This document shows, piece by piece, positions 1 to 47,831 of a stretch of 64,000 bases of DNA. Where the stretch lies: positions 248,001 to 312,000 of IMG/VR virus record IMGVR_UViG_3300025133_009608; one strand, written 5' to 3'. The stretch's first letter is position 1, and the number at the start of each line of letters is the position of its first letter. Made by a program: the position numbers and the translations under genes. The notes below the pieces were generated by a model. That model saw nothing but the letters and a program-made list of their open reading frames with translations, ran no database searches and had not been told where the DNA came from.

Positions 1-2047
1 GAACCTCTTCTTCCGATATATGCTCGGAATGTAGGACGTATGAGCTCACAGCTTTCGAGATAAGCACATCTGGCAGGTGATTGTCCTTATTCGCCCTCAT
101 AACCTTCTCAAATCCGTAACTTCGTTCGTCGATCATTATTGTTTCAATATTTTTAGCAAGAAACCTCAAAGCAATTGGGGATAGCGCAGACATCCCAAGT
201 ACGGAAAAGAAAACACTACTGAGATTGTACTCTTTACCTTTCTCTTCCATATTGCTCAAAACACCGTCGACCAAGTTATGCTCCTCTCGACCGGCTAGGA
301 CTGCTATAACTTCATCCGGAGACCATAGGGCTCCGGAGTAATAATTATCCATTATCTTTTCAGTCTCGGCAATCATCCAATAATCGTCTGAATCTTCATA
401 ATCTATTGGAGCAAAATACTCATCCAGCCAATTACGAATATATGGTGCATACTTCTGTACCGGAGGGGCGTTTTCCTTTCCCTTTATTTGATGCACATTT
501 CTGCCCGATGAGCCTCCCACCTCTATTGTCACGTGAGGCTCATTCTTGGCGTCTCTTAGAGAATAGATCTTAAGGCGCCCAATGATGATGTCATCGCAAT
601 AGCCCCCAACGCAGTGCCCCATGTTGCGACCCTCGGTTTCGACATCCTCGGGCGGGACAAGAACCATCGTGTATCCGTCCCCAAAATCATGATGAACATT
701 TTTTGTATTATATTCGCCAACTTCAATAGCCGGAACAAACTGCTCGTGCCACTTTTCGGCAGCCTGGATCATGGTCTGCGCGGAAATACTCTGCCATGGG
801 CCCATTCCCGGCTCAGGGAACGCATCCAGAGAGTTCACATAATCCTTAATTTGAATTAAAACCAGCCGTGGCGATGCCGCTTCATTCATATTAATGTTCG
901 CCAGCCACTTAATAAATGGCTTTCTATTCTTATGGGGCAACAGGTCATCACCGACGAGGGCAATGGCATTTAATGCCGATCTATTAAAAATTGGTCCATC
1001 CTCTGCCCTCTCGGAAAGGCTCTCAAAATAAGATCGAGGATCTTGCTCCGGGCTCTTTGCGATCTGCTTTTGCAATGACTTTATATTAATCTTTTTTAGA
1101 TACTCCTTATCTGCCTGTGCGGCAACCTTGTGCAGCTTTTCTATCTGGCCCATCCGGCCTCTTTCGCTTTCGCAAGCTCTAATTATTGATATATCTTTTG
1201 CCTCTTTCTTGAAGCCATTACTCCGAAGCCATTTCGACAGCCTATCTAGAGCATAATCAGGCTCATCTGGCCACTCATCCGGATCGAACTCAGACCACTG
1301 CTCATTTAGCGAAATATATTTAGATGGTATGTGACCATTGATAATTATTGTATCGTGATCAACTCCGTCATTAGCCGCCTCAGAATCAGAATACTCCACC
1401 CCCAGAGCCCAGGCTATGGAGTTTATCATTTTTTCTCTATAAATAGCCGGCTCCATCTCTATAACAGGGAGCTCTTCATTCTTTTGCTCATAATCTTTGC
1501 GCATCGCGCTTAAATCTATTTCAAATATATAGTCGCCATAAGAGTCAATTGCTTCTGGATTGAAGCTTGCGAAAATAGCACTTCCAACCCAGCGATTTGA
1601 AAGCCCCCTCGTCTTGCTCATTGGAGATAGCCCTTCTCGCATAATTGATTTAACATTCTCTCCTGGAGTTGCGTGATAGGCTATTCCGGCAAAGTAATCC
1701 TCCTGATAATTCTCCTCGTCAACGTAGTCTTCTGGGGAAATGTTATAAATCCAATGATTCGCGTCTTCGGAGCCGCTTATATTTTCACCGTCCATGTCAG
1801 CAACATGTTTGTCGCCCCGCCAGCCAAATGCATAAATTTTACTCAGGCCCTCTTTTTCGTTCGTAAGATCTATAACTTCCGTGGATCCACCGTCCTTATT
1901 TATAAGCTCAGAAAACCTACTCCAATTAAGCGCCTCATACCCCCCTATCACGTCCTCAAGGATCCCGAGCTCTTCCTCGGTCAAGCCTTCTGGTTTCATG
2001 GCAGCTTTAAATAGACTTTTAACTCTTAATCGCCTAAAGCTTCTCAT
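1..2047 (-). CDS. Polyvalent protein A (partial, runs off left edge): ADP-ribosyltransferase-fold domain + PcfJ-like domain
   Basis: Not in the supplied track. Translated by hand from ATG 2047 (ATGA overlap with the stop at 2044-2046) to base 1 with no stop (>680 aa). Starts MRSFRRLRVKSLFKAA. ART-like YHATPGENVKSIMREGLSP...SAIFAS...YIFEIDL. Internal RMGQIEKLHKVAA. PcfJ-like EGRNMGHCVGGY...IYSLRDAKNEPHVTIEV. Confidence 0.85.
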   Translation of the reverse strand, partial: MRSFRRLRVKSLFKAAMKPEGLTEEELGILEDVIGGYEALNWSRFSELINKDGGSTEVIDLTNEKEGLSKIYAFGWRGDKHVADMDGENISGSEDANHWIYNISPEDYVDEENYQEDYFAGIAYHATPGENVKSIMREGLSPMSKTRGLSNRWVGSAIFASFNPEAIDSYGDYIFEIDLSAMRKDYEQKNEELPVIEMEPAIYREKMINSIAWALGVEYSDSEAANDGVDHDTIIINGHIPSKYISLNEQWSEFDPDEWPDEPDYALDRLSKWLRSNGFKKEAKDISIIRACESERGRMGQIEKLHKVAAQADKEYLKKINIKSLQKQIAKSPEQDPRSYFESLSERAEDGPIFNRSALNAIALVGDDLLPHKNRKPFIKWLANINMNEAASPRLVLIQIKDYVNSLDAFPEPGMGPWQSISAQTMIQAAEKWHEQFVPAIEVGEYNTKNVHHDFGDGYTMVLVPPEDVETEGRNMGHCVGGYCDDIIIGRLKIYSLRDAKNEPHVTIEVGGSSGRNVHQIKGKENAPPVQKYAPYIRNWLDEYFAPIDYEDSDDYWMIAETEKIMDNYYSGALWSPDEVIAVLAGREEHNLVDGVLSNMEEKGKEYNLSSVFFSVLGMSALSPIALRFLAKNIETIMIDERSYGFEKVMRANKDNHLPDVLISKAVSSYVLHSEHISEEEV

Positions 2048-2484
2048 TGCCCCCTCCAGTACATTATCAGGGCAGGTACATGCGTCATTCCAAGCTCTAT
2101 GGCCGCTGCGAGTCGATGACGACCACTAACGAGCTTATAGCTTCTATTTCCCCATGAACTTTTCCATAATGTTACCGGAGGAAGCGGAACCCCACTCATC
2201 ATTTTATCTTTCAGCTCATTCGTCCAGATCCTTCCATATTCTTCTTGTTTTTTTGCCAAATTTATTGGAGCATTATAATCAAACTCTTCGACCGAGATAA
2301 TTTCAATTCCGTCGCCAAACAAATCCTCCTTCCTATCTTCGGGCCCCAAAAACTGCTGCACTTCCCCCTGGGCATCATGCATTTCCCTGTCTACAGATGA
2401 GTGGTCAGCTTCCCATGTGACTCGCTCTACGGCTTCGGCGATCTTAAGGAATCTTTTTAATTGCATTTTTCTGCAGCCCTTCAT
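2044..2484 (-). CDS. ParB/sulfiredoxin-like domain protein with N-terminal motif leader
   Basis: PPVTLW...YKLVSGRHRLAAAIELGMTHVPALI is a ParB/Srx G-x-H-R signature; leader RKMQLKRFLKIA. Confidence 0.75.
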   Translation of the reverse strand: MKGCRKMQLKRFLKIAEAVERVTWEADHSSVDREMHDAQGEVQQFLGPEDRKEDLFGDGIEIISVEEFDYNAPINLAKKQEEYGRIWTNELKDKMMSGVPLPPVTLWKSSWGNRSYKLVSGRHRLAAAIELGMTHVPALIMYWRGQ

Positions 2485-4958
2485 TCCAAGACATCCTTAT
2501 ATCCAGCGACCCATGAATCATCCTGCTCTATGTTTTGCATTTGATTTTTAGAAATCATTATCCAAATATACTTCTCTCCGGCATTGATTGCCGCAAAGGC
2601 CCTATGATTCCCATCTCGAATTTGGAATGTAAATTTGCCCAGATCTCCCCCTCCAGACTCCTCTGCTTTTTTCAACTGCAATTCTAACTCATCTTTGAGC
2701 TCGTTATATGAGCTTTTGATTATCTCATATTCGTCATCATATTCTGCATTGTTATTTAAGTATTCTTCTTTATCCTTCAAATATTCATCTAGATCTTCAT
2801 CTCCAGTTGTTAATGGCGCATGGCCGTAATCTTCCTGGTACTGTATCGACTCTTCAACCTCGCTGAGTCCGACTTTTGACATCTCGCCATATGGCGCGTA
2901 AAGAATCACCTTTTCTGGAGATGAATTTATCTTGTCGGCCAATTGAGAAATCTTCTCATCGTAAAATACATTCCCTTGGATTGGATAAACATAATGAGAA
3001 TCCGCCCTTACCATCTTTCCGGAGTCTCCAATCCAAATTACATTTTGCCCATGATATAGATTGTCAAATTCTGTTTCGCGCTCGATCTCATCTGAATCTA
3101 AATCTGGATAAAAATCTTCACGGTATTCCGCATATTGATCCGGCTGGCGCCAAAGCGGACCTTCGTCGCGGGGGACTGCGAGCTTGAGCAGCTGATTTAA
3201 TGTTTTTAATTCTGCATATCTTTTCGAATATGCCGTAGCGGCAGTTTCCCCCACGCCCGATCCAACAAGCAGTTCGAGAATCATATCGCTGCGGTCTGGA
3301 TTATCCCTCCTGAGCTCGCTATAAAAGTCAACCATTTTAGTGACCTTCTCGGGGGGTACATTATTTATCTTCGCTACCATATTTGTGAATTCTTCGTCCG
3401 AATAATTTGGCTTAGACAGATCGTAACCCACATCCGAAAGCCTCCTCTCAGATCCATATGGCTGATCTTTCCGGGGAACAACTTTCAGGCCTAATTTTAG
3501 AAATTCTTCTCGCGAATACCAAACCGGATCCTTGCCATACTCTTTGTGTCTTATTCTCTTTATTTGCCTCGGAGAAACAAGGCCTCTCAATAATGCTTGA
3601 GGCTCGCCTCCCTGGGTCCAGGTTAGAGACAGATGTGGCCTAAAGCTATCTGGAAACTTTTTACCTGCCATCTCGGATCTGGCTTTCACTTCGGCGTTAT
3701 GCCAATCGACAGAATGGGCATGCGGATCGCTTTTTCTTCCTATATTCCCAGAATAATCAACTCCATGAAGAAATTTGGCCCTTACATCAATCTCTAGAAT
3801 TATCTGCCCATAGCTTGCAAACTTATCCGCCGCCTCTTCGGTTGGGGCCACGAAAATACCCGCGTGTCTCGGGCCGCTATAAAGCCTTGGCATAATCTTA
3901 TTTGCGTCAAATCCATTAATCATTTCGTAGCAATCCGCCAGGGTTGTGCCATGGAAAACTGTTATGATATCATTTGGACGAACATTGTTGACATCCATTT
4001 CTTCTGATATTTTAAAAATTTGACCCAAACGAACCTTCCTGGAAGACTCTTTGTCGCCCAAAGACTCGACCATATAAGAGTGAAGGCCTCGGCGATCTTC
4101 TTTATCTTCCATTTTTTGCCGCGCATATTCTGATTTATACCTCCTGTCGAAGGGGCTCTCCTCGAACCCCTCTTCGACTCGGCTTAGCATATCGGAATGA
4201 GTGGACCTTCCCATGGATGAGTCCGGCCTATAGTCTACAAAGGAAACAAACCTTCTTCCTTCTAATTGGTTATTTCTAACAAAGGTGTCGATTATTGCCG
4301 ACAACGCGTTGATCGAAGAATCATAAGACTCTCCGCCAAATGGCAGTTTATAGCTTTTATCGTACTTCTCCTTCCACTTTTTCGCCGTCATTCCGGTCCG
4401 CAAATAATCATCTTTAAATAATCCCGGATTGTCATAGGCCGGGAAGTCATTCCACATATCCTCCGGCACAACTCCGAGCGGCTCACTTACCGTGACGAAA
4501 AATACAGAATCATCCAGTTCACCGGATTCGACCTGTTTTCTTATTTTATTATATGCCTTATAATATTCGCTAGTATTGCAGCGACCATGGCCCCAAGGCT
4601 TTGTTGACGCGCATGGAACCAGGGCGATTGTCTTGTATTCTTCGGGGATTTTATAGTTTCGCATTTTTTCATGCCACTCTATAATTTCCGGCTGAGATAG
4701 AAGCCCAACGGTTTCTCCGGGAGTATATGCAACAAGATCTGGGTTTAATCTGAAATCTTTATCGCCATAACCTTTGGTTTTTTTATCCAAAAGATGTTGG
4801 CGTAATTCTGGCCAATTCTCCTCAGATATGTATGGCTTTTTTCCTTCATTATCCGAGCCCAATTGGGCTCTTTCAAATTCTGATAGCTCAATTTTTGGGC
4901 GATCGGCAGAAGACTGCTTAAAGAGTCTTTTTAGATGTAATTTTCTAAAACTTTTCAT
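2481..4958 (-). CDS. Polyvalent protein C: DUF5591-like domain + ART-fold domain + ParB/Srx-like domain
   Basis: LVPCASTKPW...FVTVSEPLGVVPEDMWNDFPAYDNPGLF (DUF5591/ArcS-like); VFHGTT...GIFVAPT...ILEIDV (ART fold); IRDGNHRAFAAINAG (ParB). Modules are separated by copies of the repeated motif. Confidence 0.75.
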   Translation of the reverse strand: MKSFRKLHLKRLFKQSSADRPKIELSEFERAQLGSDNEGKKPYISEENWPELRQHLLDKKTKGYGDKDFRLNPDLVAYTPGETVGLLSQPEIIEWHEKMRNYKIPEEYKTIALVPCASTKPWGHGRCNTSEYYKAYNKIRKQVESGELDDSVFFVTVSEPLGVVPEDMWNDFPAYDNPGLFKDDYLRTGMTAKKWKEKYDKSYKLPFGGESYDSSINALSAIIDTFVRNNQLEGRRFVSFVDYRPDSSMGRSTHSDMLSRVEEGFEESPFDRRYKSEYARQKMEDKEDRRGLHSYMVESLGDKESSRKVRLGQIFKISEEMDVNNVRPNDIITVFHGTTLADCYEMINGFDANKIMPRLYSGPRHAGIFVAPTEEAADKFASYGQIILEIDVRAKFLHGVDYSGNIGRKSDPHAHSVDWHNAEVKARSEMAGKKFPDSFRPHLSLTWTQGGEPQALLRGLVSPRQIKRIRHKEYGKDPVWYSREEFLKLGLKVVPRKDQPYGSERRLSDVGYDLSKPNYSDEEFTNMVAKINNVPPEKVTKMVDFYSELRRDNPDRSDMILELLVGSGVGETAATAYSKRYAELKTLNQLLKLAVPRDEGPLWRQPDQYAEYREDFYPDLDSDEIERETEFDNLYHGQNVIWIGDSGKMVRADSHYVYPIQGNVFYDEKISQLADKINSSPEKVILYAPYGEMSKVGLSEVEESIQYQEDYGHAPLTTGDEDLDEYLKDKEEYLNNNAEYDDEYEIIKSSYNELKDELELQLKKAEESGGGDLGKFTFQIRDGNHRAFAAINAGEKYIWIMISKNQMQNIEQDDSWVAGYKDVLE

Positions 4959-5314
4959 TGTTTCTCAATCTTAATTACCATTACATTATTAGGATCGAAT
5001 ATTACCCAATTTCCATCCAAATAAATGGAATCAAACCCTTGCTCTTGAATTTGCTGCAGGTAAAGCTTGTCATATTCGCCCCATCCGGCGGTTCTGCCAA
5101 CTGATAGTTCGACTTCCATTATATATTTTGATGATATAGCCCCAGATTCACCATTTAATATTTTATCTTTATCTTCGTGGAACCACATAACGCCCTGAGC
5201 TCCCATGCTGGGATCGAAAACATGAATAGGAACATTGCTACCATGATAGGCAGTAACTACTTCCTTGTCGGCTGCGATTTTATGCAAACTTGTTATTTTG
5301 CTAAAACGATTCAC
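4955..5314 (-). CDS. Small ADP-ribosyltransferase-fold protein (ART-PolyVal-like) with motif leader
   Basis: GTG start; leader RFSKITSLHKIA; AYHGSN...F...QGVMWFHED...QGFDSIYL...WVIFDPNNV pattern. Confidence 0.7.
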   Translation of the reverse strand: MNRFSKITSLHKIAADKEVVTAYHGSNVPIHVFDPSMGAQGVMWFHEDKDKILNGESGAISSKYIMEVELSVGRTAGWGEYDKLYLQQIQEQGFDSIYLDGNWVIFDPNNVMVIKIEKQ

Positions 5315-5328
5315 TTTAACCTAGTCCT

Positions 5329-5357
5329 TACGCTTGAAGAGCATTGATTATCAATAG
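5329..5357 (-). promoter_or_regulatory. Candidate phage promoter/regulatory elements upstream of ORF 4955-5314 (CTATTGATAATCAA and TTCAAGCGTA)
   Basis: CTATTGATAATCAA (5344-5357) matches 34083-34096 at 13/14; TTCAAGCGTA (5329-5338) is identical to 11977-11986. Both lie in short intergenic gaps. Confidence 0.45.
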
Positions 5358-5363
5358 AAATTT

Positions 5364-7187
5364 TCACTCAACGGAAACGGATTTTGCCAAATTACGAGGC
5401 ATATCGACCGAACAGCCCCTCTCTATTGCCAAATAGTACGAAAATAATTGACATGGAACCAAAAACATCAGTGGATTCAAAACTTTATTCGAGCAAGTTG
5501 GAATTTCAATGTAGTCATCAACAATATTTCGTAGCTCATCAGAGCATTTATCTTCGAATATCCCGATCACCGTTCCTTTCCTTGCCTTTATCTCTCTAAT
5601 ATTTGAAATCATTTTCTCCTCAGATGCATCAGCGGAAACCAGCGCTAATGTTGGCATTTCTTCCGAAATCAAGGCCAGAGGCCCGTGCTTCAACTCAGCA
5701 GCGGAGTATCCTTCGGCGTGAATATAGCTTATTTCTTTTATTTTCAATGCAGCCTCTTTTGCGACCACTTCTAATGGCCCTCGGCCGATCGTTAGCATGT
5801 TATTATATTTTGCATATTTTTTGGCCAACACCTTGAGTTTGTCGGCAGACTCAAGCGCTCCAAGCATAGCGCCCGGAAGACTTTTAAACTCAGACAGCAA
5901 AGACTCGTAACTTAGTCGAGCAAAATCTCTTTTTGCCCCGATCATTGCAGCCATAGCTAGCATCGCTGTTATTTGGTTCATAACAGCCTTGGTCGATGCC
6001 ACAGACACCTCTTTTCCTGCACGAATATATATTCCTGCGTCGACCATCTTTGAAATTGTAGAATTTGGAACATTTACAATTCCAACATTTAATGCCCCAT
6101 GGTTCTTAAATGCCTTTATGCATCCAATTGTATCCGCTGTTTCTCCGGACTGAGAAACTGACACCAAAACCGTTCCGCCCGTAACAACTGCGTTGTAATA
6201 TTTCAATTCACCGGCAGGAATCGCTCTGGTTCTTATTCTTGCGATTGTTTCCATCGCCATCGCTCCGATTTGCGCAGCATAAAATGCCGATCCGCATCCG
6301 GTAAATATTATCTCTTCTGCTTCTAGCAGATTATTAACAACAGAATCAATCCCGCCAATTCTAATTTCGTCATCGCAAACTCTCCCCGTAATAGCCGTCC
6401 TCAAGTAGTCCGGCTGTTCGAATATTTCTTTTTCCAAAAAATGAGCATAATCACCCAAATGATATTGTGACTCTACAAGTTCTACTTTTTCAAACTTCGC
6501 GTCTACTCCCGCCCCGTCTAAAGCGTGCATCTTTACCGCCCCACCTCGGGCGATTATCGCCAAACGGTTGTCTGCCATTGTAACTACATTATCTGCACCG
6601 GACGGCAGAGATCCGAAATCAGAGGATATAAATATATTATCATCCGAATCCTTAGCGATGCAGGCGGGGGAGCCTAGTCTGGCGACAAAAAGCCTATCCT
6701 TATGATCCAAATGTGTGAATACCATTGCATATGCTCCACGTATCGATCTAAGGGCGGCAATTATGGCATCTTTTATATCTAAATTTGCAGAATAAAACTG
6801 AATTAAGTTTGGAACTATTTCGCTATCCGTATCCGAGGCAAACTTAAACCCCTCCTTTTCGAGGAAGCTCTTTAGCTCGGCATAATTTTCAATAATTCCA
6901 TTATGTACCAAGGCAATTTTTTTATCATTTGAAAAATGAGGATGAGAATTAACTATACTTGGGACTCCGTGTGTTGCCCATCTATTATGCCCGAATGATA
7001 ATCCAAATGATTCGGCCTCTTCGGCTAATAGCTCCGGGTGACCTACGCACTTTTCGATCAAAAACTCACTATTTACTACCGAGACGATTCCAGCGGAATC
7101 ATATCCGCGGTAAGCAAGCCGCTCCAGCCCCGATCTCACTATGTCATATGAATTTTCATCTCCAATATATCCAAATATTCCACACAT
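5364..7187 (-). CDS. glmS: Glutamine--fructose-6-phosphate aminotransferase (isomerizing)
   Basis: N-terminal MCGIFGY, YRGYDSAG, GHNRWATHG, HNGIIEN, SDTDSE, SQSGETADT, ELKHGPLAL and C-terminal PRNLAKSVSVE; 607 aa. Confidence 0.97.
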   Translation of the reverse strand: MCGIFGYIGDENSYDIVRSGLERLAYRGYDSAGIVSVVNSEFLIEKCVGHPELLAEEAESFGLSFGHNRWATHGVPSIVNSHPHFSNDKKIALVHNGIIENYAELKSFLEKEGFKFASDTDSEIVPNLIQFYSANLDIKDAIIAALRSIRGAYAMVFTHLDHKDRLFVARLGSPACIAKDSDDNIFISSDFGSLPSGADNVVTMADNRLAIIARGGAVKMHALDGAGVDAKFEKVELVESQYHLGDYAHFLEKEIFEQPDYLRTAITGRVCDDEIRIGGIDSVVNNLLEAEEIIFTGCGSAFYAAQIGAMAMETIARIRTRAIPAGELKYYNAVVTGGTVLVSVSQSGETADTIGCIKAFKNHGALNVGIVNVPNSTISKMVDAGIYIRAGKEVSVASTKAVMNQITAMLAMAAMIGAKRDFARLSYESLLSEFKSLPGAMLGALESADKLKVLAKKYAKYNNMLTIGRGPLEVVAKEAALKIKEISYIHAEGYSAAELKHGPLALISEEMPTLALVSADASEEKMISNIREIKARKGTVIGIFEDKCSDELRNIVDDYIEIPTCSNKVLNPLMFLVPCQLFSYYLAIERGCSVDMPRNLAKSVSVE

Positions 7188-7222
7188 GCTTTTTCCCTCC
7201 GGGTTTCGTAATATCCCTTTAA

Positions 7223-7230
7223 ATTAATAG
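7223..7230 (-). promoter_or_regulatory. CTATTAAT motif upstream of glmS (candidate late-promoter core)
   Basis: Same core as the intergenic motifs at 5344-5357 and 34083-34096; GGAGG-like RBS precedes the glmS ATG. Confidence 0.35.
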
Positions 7231-7261
7231 CTAATTTTTAAATATATTGCGGAGGCTAAAA

Positions 7262-8020
7262 ATGAAACCAGTTAAATGCTATGACGATCTAGACTACATT
7301 CGAGGAAAGGACGCTAGACATATTCGGATACTACTAGAGCACGAACAGGTCAAAACGAGATTGAAGGACAACAATGTGGAAAATACAGTTGTAATTTTCG
7401 GGTCAGCAAGGACGCTTCCGCCATTAGACTTGACGTCAAAAGCTGAAGATGCTCATTTTGCAAAAGATAAAGAATTTAAAAAACAACTTTCCCAGTCGAG
7501 GTACTACGAAGAGTGCATGAAGTTGTCTGGAGACCTGATTGGGTGGTCTGATAAAAACAAGACAAATATGCATATATGCTCGGGAGGCGGCCCTGGAATT
7601 ATGGAGGCCGCCAATAAGGGTGCATTTTTGGCCAATCCAAATAAAAGTATCGGATATGGAATATCCCTCCCATTTGAGGCAGAAAATAACGAATACATCA
7701 CAGAAAATTTAAGCTTCGAGTTTCATTACTTCTTTATTCGCAAATTTTGGCTCACATATCATGCAAGAGCCGTTGTGGCCATGCCCGGTGGATTTGGAAC
7801 TATGGACGAAATATTCGAGATTCTAACACTAGTACAGTGCCAGAAAATGCCAAAAGTTCCAATAGTCCTATATGGTAAAGATTATTGGAATTCTATTTTG
7901 AACCTTCAGGCATTTGCGGACCACGGAGTGATCTCGGAAGAAGATCTGAATTTATTTAAAATATGCGACACCCCGGAAGAGGCTCTGGAGTACTTGACGA
8001 AAAGCATGGAGCTGACGTAA
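7262..8020 (+). CDS. LOG-family (TIGR00730-like) nucleotide phosphoribohydrolase
   Basis: VVIFGSART, SGGGPGIMEAANKGA, FHYFFIRKFWL, PGGFGTMDE. GGAGG RBS at 7251-7255 supports ATG 7262 rather than the track's 7247. Only convincing plus-strand gene. Confidence 0.9.
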   Translation: MKPVKCYDDLDYIRGKDARHIRILLEHEQVKTRLKDNNVENTVVIFGSARTLPPLDLTSKAEDAHFAKDKEFKKQLSQSRYYEECMKLSGDLIGWSDKNKTNMHICSGGGPGIMEAANKGAFLANPNKSIGYGISLPFEAENNEYITENLSFEFHYFFIRKFWLTYHARAVVAMPGGFGTMDEIFEILTLVQCQKMPKVPIVLYGKDYWNSILNLQAFADHGVISEEDLNLFKICDTPEEALEYLTKSMELT

Positions 8021-8024
8021 ATAT

Positions 8025-8387
8025 TTACTCTCCCTCTTTCGTCTCCGGAAGTTTATTATCCTTGGTGCCGTCAATATTGTATGTTATTTGCTCTCCATCT
8101 TCAAAGGTAATAATGGTGCCATTTATTAAATGCGAAGTAATATGAATGCTTACGAAGTCGTTCATTGAGTCGAATACCGCGATCGATCCGCGAGGTGAGG
8201 GCGAGAGCCAGTGAAGCATTACCTGTCCTGTTGCCAATAACGCCCCCTCGACTATGACTCCCGTTCCTGATATCCCCGTTTCGTCATTTTGGCGGCAGAC
8301 CGTAAAGGTTCTTATGCCCCTAGGAGCAAGTCTCGCTGGAGGGCGCGGCTTCAGATCCTCGTCCTCTGCTTTTTTCTCATCTTCCAT
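8025..8387 (-). CDS. Conserved phage hypothetical protein
   Basis: RTFTVCRQNDETGISGTGVIVEG...G...LHWLS...GSIAVFDS...IH pattern recalled from small phage hypothetical proteins; ATG directly follows the TAA of the upstream ORF. Confidence 0.65.
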   Translation of the reverse strand: MEDEKKAEDEDLKPRPPARLAPRGIRTFTVCRQNDETGISGTGVIVEGALLATGQVMLHWLSPSPRGSIAVFDSMNDFVSIHITSHLINGTIITFEDGEQITYNIDGTKDNKLPETKEGE

Positions 8388-8567
8388 TTAGGCCTCTGCC
8401 GCAGGAGACATGCTGTGTACCGCAAGGGTCTCTATCGCATCCTCTTCTGCTGCCTTTATTTCATCCATCATTTCCCAAACGCTAGCGTTTTCGTCCATAA
8501 GTCTTTCGTTTTCTTTTTCTAGTTCTTTTATCTTGGCGTACGGCCTAAATATGTCTCTAAATTTCAT
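8388..8567 (-). CDS. Small (59-aa) coiled-coil hypothetical protein
   Basis: Below the track length cutoff. MKFRDIFRPYAKIKELEKENERLMDENASVWEMMDEIKAAEEDAIETLAVHSMSPAAEA. ATGA overlap with the upstream stop, abuts the downstream ATG and fills the gap exactly. Confidence 0.7.
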   Translation of the reverse strand: MKFRDIFRPYAKIKELEKENERLMDENASVWEMMDEIKAAEEDAIETLAVHSMSPAAEA

Positions 8568-11500
8568 GATTCGCCCCTTGTGTGTTGTTGCTCTAAAGGA
8601 ATGTTTTTTATATCATTTGTCGTTATATGCTTTAAATTTAACGACCCAGAAGAAAGTCTCTCCCAAGCTCCCTGTGCATGGATATTCATTAATACATAAT
8701 AAAGATAATTAGAATCTAGCACGCTTTTTGCCGCCGGCCTTACGGCAACTCCTATGTGCTGCGGCTCGAAAGACTTGACCACTGACCCCACTGACTCTTT
8801 CGATCCCTTCCTTATTATCCAAAAATCTGCATCTTCAAAGTTTGTTTTAATCTCGCAGAAACCTCCGAGCTTGAGCGGGCTGGCAAGCTTATGGAGCTTT
8901 GCAATTTTATAAGATCTTCCATCCTCAATTATATTTTCGTTAGGAAAAGCTCCCCACTCAAACTTCTCCTCATCATCGCCGACTGGACTATAAAGATCGT
9001 TGTAATCTCCAGAGGATACCATGGCATCAAAGGTTCTATCTCCATCTAAATATGCTTGAAAAATTCTATGATTGCCATCTTCAACAATAAGTTGCTCGTG
9101 TTTGGTGTCCCAAAATAATTCCGGGAGCCCTTCCGTCATCGATGGCCTTCCGAGGCGAAGATGCCTCAAAGTCGAATCGCCCTGACCCTTAGACATAGTG
9201 ATTTTTTCAAAAGGAATGCCCCTAACCAGGGTGTATCCGCTTTCGCTATCTTCTATTTCTCCAAGCAGATCCTCCGAGAATGAGAAGGGCATTTTTGAGA
9301 ATGGAAGCTCCAATTGACGGCCGCTCTGCTTGCGAGCCTCGTTGTCATCGGCCAAATCCTCATCTTCCTCATATTCTATCTCTTCGAACTGTCCGTATCC
9401 TAATTCGTTTTTTGTCTCAAAGTATATTGAGGCCTCTTCCGGCGTTGCCTCGTAATAATCTGACAGCCCCTTGTAGCTCATTTCATCGTTCCGATAAATA
9501 TCGCTAGCGTTCGCCAGAATATAATATGAATCAATAAATTTTGCCGGGATTCTGCCGCGATATCCATATACGCCCATCTCCCTAGACACCGCCATCGCCG
9601 TGCCCGGCATTGCCTCACCTTGGGTGCCGGAGCTGCGAGTTTTGTTGGAAATATAGTCATAAACATTGGTCTGTTCCGACTTGTTATTTATATCATAATC
9701 CGGAACAAGTTTGGCCTCATCCTGCAGAGAAAACTCAACGATCATGGGGTCGTCGCCAACCTTATCTGCTGTATGTACCGCGTGCGCTCGAGCTTCATCA
9801 AATCTGGATGTAAAAAATATTAAATCAGAATGGGCAATATCTTTATAATTCGTCTCTGACACTCCCGGCCGAAGTCCCGTCTTTAAAATATCTCCCAAAT
9901 ACTTGGTTGACGTACCGTGAAACATGGTCTTTGCAACTCTCCCGCGTATTTCGTGCTTTGATGCTTCAAACTCATCATCTCCGCCGTAATAAACAACGTT
10001 GTTTAGCCCTAGCTCTTTGAATACTTTTTTCACTAAGATTGAAGACTTCGGGTCCAGGGAAAACCCCCCTCTTCTTTGCAAGTGAAGATCAGAGCGTGGA
10101 GGGTTGGTCCAGGGGGCGTCATGGATCGACCCAACAAGAACGTCAGAGCGCCCCTCATCGTCGATTGCCGTGTATAGATCCTCTAAGATCTCCCAGTCTT
10201 TATACTTCATCCCTATTTCGGTATTTATTTCATCTATAATGTCATCAGGTATGGGCTCATCATCATCTTCGAATCTCCATATTTTGGAGCCAAACGCAAC
10301 AATCGAAGATCCGCTGCCGTAGATATGCATAGCAATTTTATGTAAGCTTGCAATCTTGTCCATTCTAGCGCTGATATCAAAGTGAGCTAGAGCCAATAGA
10401 ACCCCCGGATGAACATCAAGACTCGAAACCTCGTCTAAATCGACAATCTTCCAATCTGTATGCTCCCAGTTTAGCGTCGGGCTTATCGAGCCCATTACGT
10501 CCGCAGTAACTTCCAGCAGAAACGTCGTAAAAGTAAAGCTGCCATCTTTAAAAACATAATTATCTACAAACCTTCCAGATGGTATGCCTCCGATCTCCTC
10601 TTCGGCCTCATGGATTGCAGATTCTTTCGGATCCCTCCCGCCCCCGTTAGAGTCCCTCGGAATGGCCCCTCCAGAAATGCCCCACAATCCCGGGTTCTCA
10701 ACGTATGGTGAGCGCTTGAGTAATAATATTCTTTCGCCGTCCGTTATCATTATGCCCGAGGCTGCTGAGCCCCAGTACTTCCCGACAAAGCCTTCGTCCC
10801 GGTAGTCCGTGGCTACTTTATTTAATTTCGCGATCTTTCTTTGACGCTTGGACATCTCCTCGTCATATCCATCGGACTGGCCAATTACCTCTCCGCCTGG
10901 AAGCACCGCCCTCCAGGTGCTGCCCACGGTCTTCTCGTGCTCAGCTATATAATCGACATAATCATTTCCACCATAATGAAATGTTAATTCATAATTTGGA
11001 TACCCAGAATCCTCTACCACATATAGTATTCTGTTCTTTCCCGAGAATCCAATTGGCATCATTGAGCGAAGATTTTGATGACGCCAATCGTTATCACTTT
11101 TTATATTTATAAGCTCTGGAGCGGCGGCGCTTAGGGCATCGACCGAGACTCTTAGCTTTTCCCATGAGCCCTTAAAGGCATTATTTCTAGTGGTTTCGAT
11201 TAAGTCTTCATAATCTTGAATCTTATCTTCGACCCCCTCTACCATTTGGTTGTTGCGCCTTATGATTCCTTCAATTATTTTATTATAACGTTTAATGTTC
11301 TCATCTTTATAACGATGAGCCTCGACCTCCATGAGGTGATTCGCATAAGAAATGAAGACATCTTTGAATAAACCATAGAATCGCTCTCTCTGTCTTTTTA
11401 TCCTATTCTTAAATCCAGGATGGTTTTCGATTAAAATATTTCCTAGGTCGTCTATCTTATCCGAATAGTCCCAAAGTCTAATTTCATCATATATCTTATT

Positions 11501-11950
11501 GTAAAAATCTGGATTAAGATTTCCCGAGTATCCCCAGCCACTTCTAGCGCCGTGGAAGACAAGGCTGCCCTCAAACGTGCGAAAGAATTGGTCAGCAGAA
11601 GACCCAATAATCCTGGATATATTCGGCAGTACAAAATCTTCGTCAACCATAGCATCTGGGCTGCGAGTTTCATAAGTTATGCCAATCATTAATTTATTAT
11701 CTCCGCGGGTCGTGGCGGTGCTCGATGCGGAAGATGCGGATCCAAAATTATCGGTCATATAGACGCCACCATGAGTCTTTATGGAGCTTGTGCCGGCCCC
11801 GCGTCCAAACTCATCGTTATAAACGGGGGGCTTATTTGGCAATAATCCTTCTTTTAGGATCCCCCTTAAATTATTTGAGGTTGTTCCGTGCCAAAATAGC
11901 TTTCTTTCGGCAATCTTGTGCAGCCTCGATATTTGCCCCGAGCGATTCAC
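8564..11950 (-). CDS. Polyvalent protein E: ART-fold + Nudix + second ART-fold + ParB/Srx + HsdS-TRD-like domain
   Basis: FWHGTT...ILKEGLLP...GGVYMT (ART); WGISGGAIP...ESAIHEAEEEIG (Nudix box); MFHGTST...ILKTGLRP...LIFFT (ART); VEDGNHRIFQA (ParB); YLYYVLM...SSGSLNLKHITTNDIKNIPL (HsdS TRD-like). Four motif copies; GGAG RBS before GTG. Confidence 0.85.
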   Translation of the reverse strand: MNRSGQISRLHKIAERKLFWHGTTSNNLRGILKEGLLPNKPPVYNDEFGRGAGTSSIKTHGGVYMTDNFGSASSASSTATTRGDNKLMIGITYETRSPDAMVDEDFVLPNISRIIGSSADQFFRTFEGSLVFHGARSGWGYSGNLNPDFYNKIYDEIRLWDYSDKIDDLGNILIENHPGFKNRIKRQRERFYGLFKDVFISYANHLMEVEAHRYKDENIKRYNKIIEGIIRRNNQMVEGVEDKIQDYEDLIETTRNNAFKGSWEKLRVSVDALSAAAPELINIKSDNDWRHQNLRSMMPIGFSGKNRILYVVEDSGYPNYELTFHYGGNDYVDYIAEHEKTVGSTWRAVLPGGEVIGQSDGYDEEMSKRQRKIAKLNKVATDYRDEGFVGKYWGSAASGIMITDGERILLLKRSPYVENPGLWGISGGAIPRDSNGGGRDPKESAIHEAEEEIGGIPSGRFVDNYVFKDGSFTFTTFLLEVTADVMGSISPTLNWEHTDWKIVDLDEVSSLDVHPGVLLALAHFDISARMDKIASLHKIAMHIYGSGSSIVAFGSKIWRFEDDDEPIPDDIIDEINTEIGMKYKDWEILEDLYTAIDDEGRSDVLVGSIHDAPWTNPPRSDLHLQRRGGFSLDPKSSILVKKVFKELGLNNVVYYGGDDEFEASKHEIRGRVAKTMFHGTSTKYLGDILKTGLRPGVSETNYKDIAHSDLIFFTSRFDEARAHAVHTADKVGDDPMIVEFSLQDEAKLVPDYDINNKSEQTNVYDYISNKTRSSGTQGEAMPGTAMAVSREMGVYGYRGRIPAKFIDSYYILANASDIYRNDEMSYKGLSDYYEATPEEASIYFETKNELGYGQFEEIEYEEDEDLADDNEARKQSGRQLELPFSKMPFSFSEDLLGEIEDSESGYTLVRGIPFEKITMSKGQGDSTLRHLRLGRPSMTEGLPELFWDTKHEQLIVEDGNHRIFQAYLDGDRTFDAMVSSGDYNDLYSPVGDDEEKFEWGAFPNENIIEDGRSYKIAKLHKLASPLKLGGFCEIKTNFEDADFWIIRKGSKESVGSVVKSFEPQHIGVAVRPAAKSVLDSNYLYYVLMNIHAQGAWERLSSGSLNLKHITTNDIKNIPLEQQHTRGES

Positions 11951-44522: not shown

Positions 44523-47500
44523 TTAACTTATCCTAAATTCTTCTCGTAAAACTGCCTCAAAAAGTATTAATCCGGGAGAGATGTACTGATTATCTAGAGC
44601 TTTAATAAATGATTTTCTTCCGCCAAGTCCAGACTCATTAAACATAGATATATCAACTGAGTCGACACCCTTAACGGAGGCCGCAGAAGATATAAGATCA
44701 CTGTAATCAACCACGGACCCGAGTCTCGAAGAATTTAACGTGTTAGTTATATTGTTCGAAACATCCTCGATTATGGAATTTACATTAAGTATATAATCTT
44801 CATTAATCATTATAGTTCCAGATACATCTATAGATAACTCTTCTGCAGACTTTACGAGAACATCTGCCGTTATTGGCCTAACACTTTCGATTGCATTAGT
44901 TGCAGAAGATATTACGTCATTAACATTATAAGATATAGTTATTCTCTCCCCCTCCTTGGGGGCTACAAAAGAGTAATCTGCATAATATATATCATTGCTT
45001 CCCGGCTGGCTCATGGAATCTATCAAAATAGATCCGGAAAGCAATCCAGTCGAGGCTCTAAATCCAGATGATACAGATACTCTGTTTATTAATCCAAATC
45101 TTTTATTTGTAATGCTACTGCCAGACCCTGAAAAATATAGCTCTTCGACATCTTGGTCATTATAAACCAAGACGCTAACCCTAATAATATCGCCTGAAAT
45201 CGCCGTAACACTAGAGTTATTTGGAGTGGATGGCAGGCTCACGTTGTACGCCTCAAGAGACGGCGCATAGAAAGATTTTTTAGGACTATATTTCGCACTC
45301 AACAGGCCCGCCCCGGCAATATCATATTTTAACCTGAGAGTCATGTTAGAGGACAACAGCTGTGCCGAATCAATTCTGGCGATGCCCACTCCATTCGGAA
45401 TTGTTCCCCCAAAGAAGCTTTCGAGCTCTGATTTTAAAGATATTGTCAGGCCGTCAATTGATAGCCCTGCGGTTAAATCTAGATCAAATCTTGTCAGGGT
45501 TTCTCCTGCGATCTTGATCTTTCCCGGAGAGCCTGCACCAATCACCGAGACGGCTAGTTGTGCTGGCCCAAATCTCGAAACACCTCCGGAGGCGTGGTCA
45601 AAAAATATTGGCTGCATACCCTGGGCACTATCAGACGTTACAGAAGAAAATAGAGAGTTAGAAACGTCAGAGCCGAGGATCGGCAGCGCCTCCAGGGACA
45701 CTTCGCCAATAATATTTGGAATTTCTGCAACGTATTTTACAAAAATATCCGAACCCAACTGCTCCGTCTCGTCTACGAGGTCTAATACCTGCGCCTCCGA
45801 TAATATGTCCTCGGAAGGAAGAGTTATTGAGTTTAGGCCGAACGATCCATTGCCGCCCTCGATGTCAAATAACTCTACCTTGTTAAAGAACGCAGTCACA
45901 GCCTCTCCGGCGACTGCCGGAGAATCCGATGGCAAATATATGATGTTAGATGCAAACCCGCCATCTGAAGCTTTTGTATTATAAACTTCGACCCCAGTCG
46001 AGGTAATCACCGACTCAACATTTTTTATGTCGGGGTATTCTCCGCCAAGATCTATCCCGATTGCCCCCAAGACTCCATCTCTTGGGACGCCCCCTATGGC
46101 TCCGTCTATTGTGGATACTGAGTAAACAGAAACCACCCTACTTATTTGCTGCTCGGTGGAAACTATATACTCTATGCCATCGCTGGTCTTTTCTATTATT
46201 GCGGATTCTTTATAGATTCCATTGCTTAGCGCCCAATCTATGACGTCAGACTTTGAATCATCGAATAAGCTGCGCTCATTATCAACATGATCATAATCGA
46301 TATACTTATCGAATCTTTTTCTCCATGTATACGCCGCCTCAAGAATGTCCGATGAGCTTGGAAGGCTCCGGCCTTCGATTCTTATTAGCCCGGTCTCCGA
46401 TCCGCCGCCAGACAAGCTGTTGCTGCGGCCCACCACATAGGTCTCACCCGTTGTTTTATTTTTTATAGAAGAAACGCTAGTAACTGGAAAGTGATTTAAT
46501 TGGATATAATCTCTTCCAGATATAGATATAGATGAGTTTTCTCCTATTATTCTAATATCCTGGTATACGCTGCCCATATCGGACATATCGGTATATCTCA
46601 GAGCATCAGCACTATTCAGACTTGGCTTTGAAACTATTTCCCCAAGAACCTCTTTCTCTCCGGATATAAAATGAATCGAATCGAATCCAAACGGGCTTCC
46701 GCCTGTTTCTGGGTTCAGATCTTTCACTAATCTATAATTTCCAGAGGACACCCCATTCTCATCGGTAGATTCTTCCGCGAAGACCCCCGACTGGCTTCCT
46801 ACAATAGAGACTATCGAATCGACCGGCTGAAATGGAAGGTTTCCGTTTTTAAATGCCAAAACTCTACGCTCCGATGCAGTCCTTGTTGGGTCTTGCCCGG
46901 CTTGCCCGAGAATTACATCATTTCTTTCATCACTAGCTCCGCCACTACCCGATAGATCTGTATATATAAATGACTCTGAAGATTCCACTATATTTTTTCC
47001 GAGAATGTATACATCGACTTTTCCGCCAGTTCCAGAAGATAAAATTCGACTCTCACCGCCGTCTAATTCTATAGTTTCTGTTCCGTCTCTCGACATGAGT
47101 GTATCTCCCGGCTCCACAACTATCGCGTCCAGAACTCCCGGAGAGCTGAGCGCTGCGCTTCTATACCCAGAAGATGTTCCGGTATTTGAACCTCCAAATA
47201 TAGACAAAATCCTTGCACGAAAAGAGGAGTCAACCTCTACGTTTGATCCTCCAAATAGCGAGGTTAAATTTACAACATTAACTCCGGATCCAACATTTGA
47301 TTCTATAATCTGAAGAGATGCAACATTTCCGGCAGTACCGGGGCGTGTTGCCTGAACTGGAACTTCAATCGCATATTTACTATTTATTCCCGCTATATTT
47401 AGTGACTTTCTAAGCCTATTTGCCGTTGCTGCGAACCTTCCCTTCTCAAATGGGGTCATTGCATAATTGCCGATTACAGAAAACGAAACGCCATTTCTAG

Positions 47501-47831
47501 ATCTAACGGTCGTTCCAGATGGAATTAGGATATCAGTAGAAATCGAATTTGTAGCAAAAATAACGACCCCAGATGCTAACGCTCCGGCCGCTCTTGTTAT
47601 CCCAAAATTTGATGCAAGCATATCCAAATCCGCACCAGAGGTTGAGGCCAAAGATTGTTTTTCAGATATTGCCGCCAGCGTTCTATATAGCCGATCAATT
47701 TGGTCCGCCTGAATATCTACAAACAAATCCCTAGATACAGATCCGGGCTTGGTATCAAGATTTGGCTGAACCAATCTTAATCTTTCCAACATCGTTGCTA
47801 CTACTTCGCTAAATGTTCTAAATGATGCCAT
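44523..47831 (-). CDS. Baseplate J-like (T4 gp6-like) wedge protein, extended
   Basis: RTFSEVVATML...LDTKPGSVSRDLF...GADLDMLASNFGITR..G..ASGVVIF...IPSGTTV...VQATRPGTAGNV...VVNLTSLFGGSNVEVDSSFRARI. Confidence 0.9.
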   Translation of the reverse strand: MASFRTFSEVVATMLERLRLVQPNLDTKPGSVSRDLFVDIQADQIDRLYRTLAAISEKQSLASTSGADLDMLASNFGITRAAGALASGVVIFATNSISTDILIPSGTTVRSRNGVSFSVIGNYAMTPFEKGRFAATANRLRKSLNIAGINSKYAIEVPVQATRPGTAGNVASLQIIESNVGSGVNVVNLTSLFGGSNVEVDSSFRARILSIFGGSNTGTSSGYRSAALSSPGVLDAIVVEPGDTLMSRDGTETIELDGGESRILSSGTGGKVDVYILGKNIVESSESFIYTDLSGSGGASDERNDVILGQAGQDPTRTASERRVLAFKNGNLPFQPVDSIVSIVGSQSGVFAEESTDENGVSSGNYRLVKDLNPETGGSPFGFDSIHFISGEKEVLGEIVSKPSLNSADALRYTDMSDMGSVYQDIRIIGENSSISISGRDYIQLNHFPVTSVSSIKNKTTGETYVVGRSNSLSGGGSETGLIRIEGRSLPSSSDILEAAYTWRKRFDKYIDYDHVDNERSLFDDSKSDVIDWALSNGIYKESAIIEKTSDGIEYIVSTEQQISRVVSVYSVSTIDGAIGGVPRDGVLGAIGIDLGGEYPDIKNVESVITSTGVEVYNTKASDGGFASNIIYLPSDSPAVAGEAVTAFFNKVELFDIEGGNGSFGLNSITLPSEDILSEAQVLDLVDETEQLGSDIFVKYVAEIPNIIGEVSLEALPILGSDVSNSLFSSVTSDSAQGMQPIFFDHASGGVSRFGPAQLAVSVIGAGSPGKIKIAGETLTRFDLDLTAGLSIDGLTISLKSELESFFGGTIPNGVGIARIDSAQLLSSNMTLRLKYDIAGAGLLSAKYSPKKSFYAPSLEAYNVSLPSTPNNSSVTAISGDIIRVSVLVYNDQDVEELYFSGSGSSITNKRFGLINRVSVSSGFRASTGLLSGSILIDSMSQPGSNDIYYADYSFVAPKEGERITISYNVNDVISSATNAIESVRPITADVLVKSAEELSIDVSGTIMINEDYILNVNSIIEDVSNNITNTLNSSRLGSVVDYSDLISSAASVKGVDSVDISMFNESGLGGRKSFIKALDNQYISPGLILFEAVLREEFRIS

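Follow-up and report, generated by a model that had tools for sequence, protein, structure and literature searches.

A probable polyvalent-type effector locus with five ADP-ribosyltransferase-like cassettes in a marine jumbo myovirus

Polyvalent proteins are large phage proteins in which unrelated effector domains are strung together in an order that is reshuffled from protein to protein (Iyer, Burroughs, Anand, de Souza and Aravind, 2017, PMC5512222). ADP-ribosyltransferases (ARTs) are their commonest modifying domain and often occur in several copies, alongside ParB-like, GNAT and Nudix-linked domains; the proteins travel inside the virion and enter the host together with the DNA, and MuF or portal fusions or a processing peptidase frequently mark them (PMC5512222). 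Polyvalent proteins with several ARTs are already known, as is the occurrence in jumbo myoviruses of ART, Nudix and SLOG families, which are enriched there (PMC9503650). Here we describe a 12 kb locus in a 64,000-nucleotide stretch of DNA (the window), bases 248001-312000 of the 316,664-bp IMG/VR record IMGVR_UViG_3300025133_009608 (CheckV completeness 94%). In our judgement the products of its genes D, C, B and A, together with that of gene H, are probably polyvalent-type anti-host effectors of a marine jumbo myovirus, carrying five ART cassettes of the H-Y-E class.

Among phage ARTs which modify host proteins, Alt, ModA and ModB of T4 are members of the R-S-E clade. The five modules described here all carry the strand-1 His of the H-Y-E clade and share no homology with the T4 enzymes beyond the fold. 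T4 Alt is packaged in the virion (PMC5512222). Compared with described polyvalent proteins, the ARTs of this locus are mostly not of the ART-PolyVal (H-Y-D) family, and a conserved linker stands between one cassette and the next. What is distinct is the mix of four ART families, a large uncurated family resembling the NAD+ lobe of Tpt1 with a Glu of the catalytic type, a linker with recombination inside it, and the lack of known processing domains in our scans.

The virus is a jumbo tailed phage (myovirus), with a Baseplate_J protein at window 44523-47831. Its closest relatives are of marine metagenome origin, and a search of cultured phages for near-identical DNA gave zero matches. Nearly all genes are on the minus strand, including gene H (8564..11950, an open reading frame (ORF) of 1128 aa with a GTG start, for which an 87% orthologue and shuffled relatives were found), gene D (4955..5314, 119 aa), gene C (2481..4958, an ORF of 825 aa), gene B (2044..2484, 146 aa) and gene A. 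The last of these is truncated by the window edge: the window holds the first 682 of its 1122 residues (2..2047), the remainder lies at genome 246679-248000, and the full gene spans genome 246679-250047. At every junction in the series D, C, B and A, the stop codon of one gene and the start codon of the next share a four-base overlap, and the four genes therefore seem to form one translationally coupled unit. A scan for promoters and terminators gave no interpretable signal. With at least five domains in H and at least three in each of C and A, the architecture is that of polyvalent proteins, and the combination of ART, ParB-like and PcfJ domains mentioned by an earlier reading of the DNA (the sequence-only reading) is present. 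Protein H consists of linker, H1 ART unit, linker, Nudix, linker, H2 unit, ParB-like segment, linker and a C-terminal domain resembling the target recognition domain (TRD) of HsdS; protein C of linker, ArcS/DUF5591-like domain, linker, C1 ART-like core with a helical extension, linker and ParB-like segment; and protein A of linker, N-domain, A1 ART, linker, PcfJ-like domain and a long C-terminal region.

The sequence-only reading had noted five H-[GA]-[TS] strand-1 motifs, and each was located within a few bases of the position it had given, all in long minus-strand ORFs: YHATPG at window 1661-1678 (protein A residues 124-129), FHGTT at 3942-3956 (C residues 335-339), YHGSN at 5234-5248 (D residues 23-27), WHGTT at 11879-11893 (H residues 20-24) and FHGTS at 9908-9922 (H residues 677-681). 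The I-x-x-x-G-L-x-P segment it had seen in three cases occurs in exactly A1, H1 and H2. In the non-overlapping ORFs of the 316,664-bp genome (approximately 99,600 residues) the pattern [FYW]H[GA][TS] was found seven times, five of them in the cluster proteins A, C, D and H. As these four proteins make up about 3% of the proteome, the clustering is beyond chance. Profiles for PARP, ART-PolyVal and the A1 family gave no match in the whole genome outside this region. That the motifs are chance tripeptides in unrelated proteins, as might be supposed from the near-noise similarity of most module pairs, is already contradicted by these counts and by the independent family, profile and structure evidence which links each module to the ART superfamily, and we give this explanation next to no credence.

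For all five modules, evidence from Pfam, profiles, language models or structures pointed to the ART superfamily, with uneven strength, as detailed below for each module. Their description as divergent paralogues held for H1 and H2, which are detectably related (hhalign of the two families, probability 91.6%, E 8e-7), and failed for A1, D and C1, which come from other families. Direct pairwise BLAST and phmmer comparisons among the five modules were near noise except for H1-H2, and hhalign of C1 with D, C1 with H2 and A1 with H2 gave probabilities of only 3-28% with the alignments in register. The His of strand 1 and a conserved acidic residue are retained in every module, a pattern that would allow NAD+ binding and transfer of ADP-ribose.

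The H1 ART module occupies the N-terminal half of its unit (11441..11908, minus strand, H residues 15-170) and contains WHGTT (H21) and GGVY (Y64), with H21 and Y64 invariant across five homologues. Like PARP (PF00644) it has the W-H-G-T...I-L-x-x-G-L signature of strand 1 and helix 1 and a G-x-Y-x-T-D second strand. Whole protein H matched Pfam PARP in two stretches (39.8 bits), isolated H1 scored 27.7 bits against a gathering cut-off of 26.7, and a PDB sequence search with H1 placed PARP1 and PARP2 on top. Unlike PARP, the match spans only about 40-110 residues and a helical stretch of roughly 120 residues precedes the putative Glu strand; H also has no regulatory, WGR or zinc-finger domain. 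The remainder of the unit (10856..11440, residues 171-365) holds this helical stretch followed by a GKNRIL..E block, which accompanies H1 in all five homologues with an invariant E313. The match of the H1 family profile to the PDB stops short of the putative Glu strand.

The H2 unit begins with an N-terminal subdomain (9959..10327, H residues 542-664) that is a constant companion of the H2 ART module itself (9446..9958, H residues 665-835), in which the motif is FHGTS (H678). The second strand of H2 is I-F-x-T-S, where Phe replaces the Tyr of PARP, and an invariant Glu lies ahead of GVYGYRGRIP in the family alignment. H2 alone scored 19.9 bits against Pfam PARP (E 5.6e-4), under the cut-off, and gave a weak match to Arr-ms. 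The family phrog_11974 covers H residues 530-814 (E 1.8e-36), and by tblastn H residues 525-840 corresponded to one gene of about 370 aa in 51 Vibrio phage records among 53 matched, mostly KVP40-like. The homologue in Vibrio phage 1.081.O was annotated by its depositors as a PARP catalytic domain protein. The KVP40 copy (KVP40.0290, L015:3995-5113) is listed as a 'hypothetical protein' and lies near asiA and topoisomerase genes.

Between the two units lies a Nudix domain (10376..10798, minus strand, H residues 385-525; PHROG MutT/NUDIX), with a Nudix box where one had been claimed (H residues about 427-455, window 10586-10672) and a Pfam NUDIX (PF00293) score of 34.7 bits against a cut-off of 21.1. 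In the alignment the three Glu of the box do not vary, the Arg position is occupied by His in this phage and differs among relatives, and the G-x-E loop is lengthened. The pairing of ART 'writers' with an 'eraser' proposed by the sequence-only reading gained no support. Nudix enzymes cleave the pyrophosphate bonds of nucleotides or of ADP-ribose, whether free or attached, and do not reverse protein ADP-ribosylation, so that this domain is not a true eraser, and no Macro domain was found in a search of the phage genome. A second, stand-alone Nudix gene is located outside the window at genome 161834-162166 on the plus strand (open frame of 161 aa, Pfam 76.7 bits).

Downstream of H2, a ParB/sulfiredoxin-like segment was weakly assigned at 8921..9253 (minus strand, H residues about 900-1010) from a DGNHR..A motif, which matches the motif of protein C locally (E 4e-4) and is kept at 68% identity in the relatives P0008 and P0009. 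The last domain (8567..8878, residues 1025-1128) is a lead only: PADLOC Specificity_I matched H residues 1040-1120 at E 4.8e-4, and this resemblance to the TRD of a Type I specificity subunit could indicate an anti-restriction decoy or a DNA-targeting domain. Pfam scans of these two segments of H gave no hit.

The A1 module (1298..1714, minus strand, A residues 112-250) resembles the NAD+ lobe of Tpt1/KptA. A word-indexed search found two relatives; exhaustive HMMER searching found 573 representative proteins at E<=0.001. In an alignment of 41 sequences H125, G139, R147, N151 and E199 were invariant and the second strand carried Phe or Tyr. Among these 41 members, Pfam matches were to Tpt1/KptA in 32, PARP in 18 and Tox-ART-HYD1 in 10. 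The module of the window scored 13.3-13.5 bits against Tpt1/KptA (PF01885), under the gathering cut-off of 26, which the family member P0086 passes with 36.3 bits. An AlphaFold2 (AF2) model of A1 had a predicted local distance difference test score (pLDDT) of 84.7 and a predicted template modelling score (pTM) of 0.78, and the top 17 Foldseek matches were all Tpt1/KptA. Like Tpt1/KptA (PDB 8tfz, 9ld6, 6e3a), A1 is thus predicted to have the ART-fold NAD+ lobe, with the matches confined to profile positions of about 85-167 of 177 and chain residues of about 85-180. The N-terminal lobe of Tpt1 is missing, a scan of A residues 1-110 having revealed no Tpt1 similarity, the invariant Glu and Asn of A1 are absent from Tpt1, and the module is set in an 1122-aa protein with a PcfJ domain. 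Because the N-lobe is missing and the invariant Glu is foreign to Tpt1, the models and alignments indicate an ART fold nearest the Tpt1 NAD+ lobe which is not itself a Tpt1. A tblastn search of cultured phages with the A1 piece gave zero matches.

These structural neighbours raise the question of whether A1 and the Nudix domain serve RNA repair, by removal of the 2'-phosphate from cleaved tRNA and subsequent clearance of ADP-ribose cyclic phosphate, instead of attack on the host. In addition to the Tpt1/KptA structures being closest to A1, the protein of one A1-family member (P0068) also contains an HD domain and the head domain of a CCA-adding/polyA polymerase, and viral KptA-Nudix fusions have been read in this way (PMC9503650). 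Against it, A1 matches only the C-terminal NAD+ lobe, its invariant Glu is not found in Tpt1, and the Nudix domain is in another protein (H). The Tpt1 N-lobe, which A1 lacks, carries three of the four catalytic Arg-His-Arg-Arg residues. There was also no RNA ligase or 2H gene seen nearby, the genome not having been searched for them, and on this evidence we consider repair quite improbable. An Arg after the GL.P turn of A1 aligns two residues off the position of the catalytic Arg of the Tpt1 C-lobe and, given the established biochemistry of Tpt1, offers a hint that the acceptor of A1 may be a nucleic-acid phosphate.

Elsewhere in protein A, the PcfJ-like domain (452..652, minus strand, A residues 466-532) was matched by Pfam PcfJ at E 4e-9 (36.9 bits against 25). 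The C-terminal third (L002:10683-11500, genome about 246679-247500) contains, by eye, approximately six repeats of P/Y-x-x-F-F followed by an Ala-rich helix; a Pfam scan of this third gave no family match.

Protein D is a stand-alone ART-PolyVal-like domain of the same size (119 aa) and pattern as ART-PolyVal (PF18760), with H24, W44/F45 and conserved Asp at 95 and 100 in the alignment. ART-PolyVal has a His in strand 1, a Tyr in strand 2 and an Asp in strand 5 (PMC5512222); D differs in apparently having Trp-Phe for the strand-2 Tyr and in being a separate gene, translationally coupled to a polyvalent protein, and not a domain within one. Its 27 relatives are likewise stand-alone proteins of about 119 aa. 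D itself scored 13.5 bits against ART-PolyVal, not reaching the gathering cut-off of 31.2, and 22 of 23 aligned homologues matched the same model, all under the cut-off (best E 2.6e-5). By ESM Atlas features D adjoins ART-PolyVal clusters (score 0.94, 200 shared), and its Atlas model aligned to ART-PolyVal, PARP and RES models with TM-scores by query of 0.64-0.70. The D-family profile gave no ART hit in the PDB. Some enzymes with the ART fold are NADases, the RES clade being an example, and the presence of RES among the structural neighbours of D would fit modules that mainly hydrolyse NAD+, to shut off the host or exclude superinfecting phages, and do not modify specific targets. Consumption of NAD+ had also been raised by the sequence-only reading. 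We hold this to be very unlikely, as the nearest families of four of the modules (PARP, Tpt1/KptA, ART-PolyVal) are transferases and depletion of NAD+ would starve the phage's own five NAD+-using modules; NAD+ salvage genes were not looked for.

The C1 core (3504..3986, minus strand, C residues 325-485, with a helical extension to about 600) contains FHGTT (H336) and is the weakest of the five modules. Its family, with 41-66% identity in four other polyvalent proteins, has an invariant His, a GIFVAP strand and an invariant E452 in EPQALLRG. Pfam ART-PolyVal matched C1 at E 0.039 (15.2 bits, cut-off 31.2) and the A1-family HMM matched it in register. Atlas feature neighbours were Arr, exotoxin A (ExoA), PARP and HYD1, and Atlas structure neighbours were DUF4433, PARP, DUF3990, HYD1 and ART-PolyVal. 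An AF2 model with pLDDT 64 led by Foldseek to TreX/TreTu, pertussis S1, Tpt1 and PARP10/15, and shape searches of AFDB and the Atlas to DarT, pierisin-like and HYD1 proteins. A PDB sequence search with C returned noise only. Every informative match was thus to an ART family, yet none was significant singly, and taken together the alignments and models indicate that C1 very probably has an ART fold. Of the classes which the sequence-only reading had put forward for a check, A1 comes out as Tpt1/KptA-like and D as ART-PolyVal-like; C1 stands as a separate family with concordant hits of which none is significant.

The remaining parts of C are an N-terminal ArcS/DUF5591-like domain (4044..4901, minus strand, C residues about 20-305), which scored 28.2 bits against 26 for Pfam DUF5591 and matched NCBIfam ArcS models at E 2e-8 and 3e-6, far under their cut-offs, and a weakly assigned ParB/sulfiredoxin-like C-terminal segment (2484..2756) with a DGNHR..AA motif. 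The likeness to ArcS (archaeosine synthase alpha, of a 7-deazaguanine modification family) was unexpected in a polyvalent protein. The ParB-like motif of C was related by BLASTP to that of B (E 0.001) as well as to that of H, and a Pfam scan of the segment gave no hit. Gene B is weakly similar to the ParB N-terminal domain (Pfam ParB_N E 0.014, under the cut-off; PHROG ParB-like E 1.6e-4; NCBIfam parB_part E 0.0012).

A basic amphipathic peptide, R..I..L[HF]K[IV]A (consensus R..I..LHKIA), was present at the N-terminus of A, B, C, D and H and at internal junctions of A, C and H, with examples such as ..ISRLHKIAE.. and ..RLRVKSLFKAA... A regular-expression (regex) scan of all 357 ORFs located 11 sites in these five proteins and three weaker ones in the other 352, with 0.34 in shuffled sequences; the pattern was derived from these same proteins and the count therefore overstates significance, though the restriction to them is still plain. 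The copies, all on the minus strand, are at 11909-11944 (N-terminus), 10808-10849, 10328-10366 and 8879-8917 in H, 5270-5308 in D, 4911-4952, 3999-4040 and 3168-3206 in C, about 2440-2475 in B, and 2000-2041 and 1118-1162 in A. The linker is kept at the corresponding junctions of the relatives P0006-P0009, which are 40-87% identical.

In a relative with 87% identity (L005), one ORF (L005:16959-19319) joins C residues 1-318 to A from residue 3, the switch falling inside the linker. Approximately 2.9 kb is absent from L005 in comparison with window 2000-4040, comprising the C1 ART, its extension, the ParB-like domain and gene B. This crossover within the linker shows it to be a site of cassette exchange, at which related phages acquire, drop and rearrange cassettes. 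The domain order is reshuffled across P0007-P0011: P0007 and P0008 (about 1540 aa) carry the ParB-like, C1, H1, H2 unit and Nudix domains in one chain in a different order, P0009 is without H1, and P0011 has Nudix first, then C1, plus a GNAT. A scan for direct repeats revealed nothing beyond short similarities, no larger than the shared linker peptide would lead one to expect. It is conceivable, if rather doubtful, that the linker is a 'cassette connector' which combines a homology patch for domain swaps with a signal for capsid targeting and/or protease cleavage, so as to give plug-and-play injected effectors. A conserved linker peptide between polyvalent cassettes was not found described in the literature.

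Among A1-family representatives in other phages, 17 of 148 matched a loose N-terminal leader pattern (0 in a control window), and about 14 of those 17 start with a MNWYK[KLI][AS]Q-like tag. Among the proteins concerned are P0047, P0054, P0075, P0089, P0149, P0170, P0171 and P0184. A tag of the MNWYK[KL]AQ type may be the counterpart of the linker leader in these phages; a literature search for the MNWYKKAQ tag found no description.

Three further genes lie within the locus. Gene G (8025..8387, minus strand, 120 aa) is 93% identical to a gene of L005 with a precomputed hit to Pfam PF26761 (Acb5), and is a candidate member of the Acb5 family and not an ART; Acb5 enzymes cleave 3'3'-cyclic GMP-AMP (3'3'-cGAMP) and block the cyclic-oligonucleotide-based antiphage signalling system (CBASS) (bioRxiv 10.1101/2025.07.12.664507). 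Gene F (7247..8020, 257 aa), the sole plus-strand gene of the region, belongs to LOG/SLOG (Pfam Lysine_decarbox E 4e-29, LDcluster4; TIGR00730 95.9 bits against a cut-off of 96.35), a family for which processing of nucleotide-derived signals in phages has been proposed (PMC9503650). Gene E (5364..7187, minus strand), between D and F, encodes a full-length GlmS. Beyond H, the minus strand carries an extended series of genes for sugar nucleotides, glycosyltransferases and related functions from window 12013 to about 29000; together with GlmS these genes at 12-29 kb suggest phage-encoded glycan synthesis. Still further along, window 29494-58035 (minus strand) contains giant ORFs of 1517, 3472, 1102 (Baseplate_J) and 2554 aa, whose products probably belong to the tail fibres and the baseplate. 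A laminin-G/ConA-like domain lies close to the end of the 3472-aa ORF.

Following the polyvalent-protein model (PMC5512222) and the survey of viral NAD+-ADP-ribose systems (PMC9503650), we infer that the five cassettes would be NAD+-binding ART folds of at least four families, with H1 and H2 PARP-like, A1 like the NAD+ lobe of Tpt1/KptA, D like ART-PolyVal and C1 separate. The modules would most likely ADP-ribosylate different host macromolecules early in infection. The Nudix domain fused to two of them, the Acb5-like nuclease and the LOG/SLOG protein would in turn remove immune signals derived from ADP-ribose or consisting of cyclic nucleotides.

Several observations weigh against this reading. 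Of the ART modules in the proteins of the window, H1 alone passes a curated threshold, and does so marginally. Its candidate catalytic Glu, E313, is placed by conservation only, with a helical insertion before its strand. In A1, C1, H2 and D the alignments put Phe or Trp in place of the stacking Tyr. Against strictly packaged effectors, Pfam scans of proteins A, C, D and H brought to light no MuF, portal or zincin peptidase domain, these domains not having been searched for by name, and a T4-type prohead protease (PF03420) was not found in a search of the genome. On the same point, the KVP40 homologue of the H2 unit is located among early/middle non-structural genes near asiA and not among virion genes. 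Finally, with GlmS and glycan-synthesis genes interleaved, the neighbourhood is not purely one of counter-defence.

The replaced Tyr, the low scores against curated ART models and the presence of neighbours which degrade or bind signals (Acb5, LOG/SLOG, Nudix) would also be expected if some or all of the ART-like modules were catalytically dead, and acted as binders or sponges of immune signals derived from NAD+ or ADP-ribose or as targeting domains. However, the His and the acidic residue are invariant in each family, including the 41 diverse A1 members, which suits catalysis better than binding alone, and Phe can still stack on nicotinamide. We therefore consider dead modules unlikely and favour ARTs that are active against the host.

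In work on phage-host conflict, the ADP-ribosyltransferases of phages are fast gaining in prominence, but few have known targets. The A1 family, with more than 500 representative clusters, mostly from phages and without a curated model, may represent a new class of ADP-ribosyltransferase acting on nucleic acids or proteins. Should the linker prove to be a packaging or processing signal, it would account for the deployment of polyvalent proteins without a peptidase domain. KVP40-like Vibrio phages are cultured systems where the H2 module could be studied. With four ART families, a Nudix domain, an Acb5-type nuclease and a LOG/SLOG protein united in 12 kb, and with natural variants which gain, lose and reorder the cassettes, this locus is a compact set for asking whether ART families differ in their host targets.

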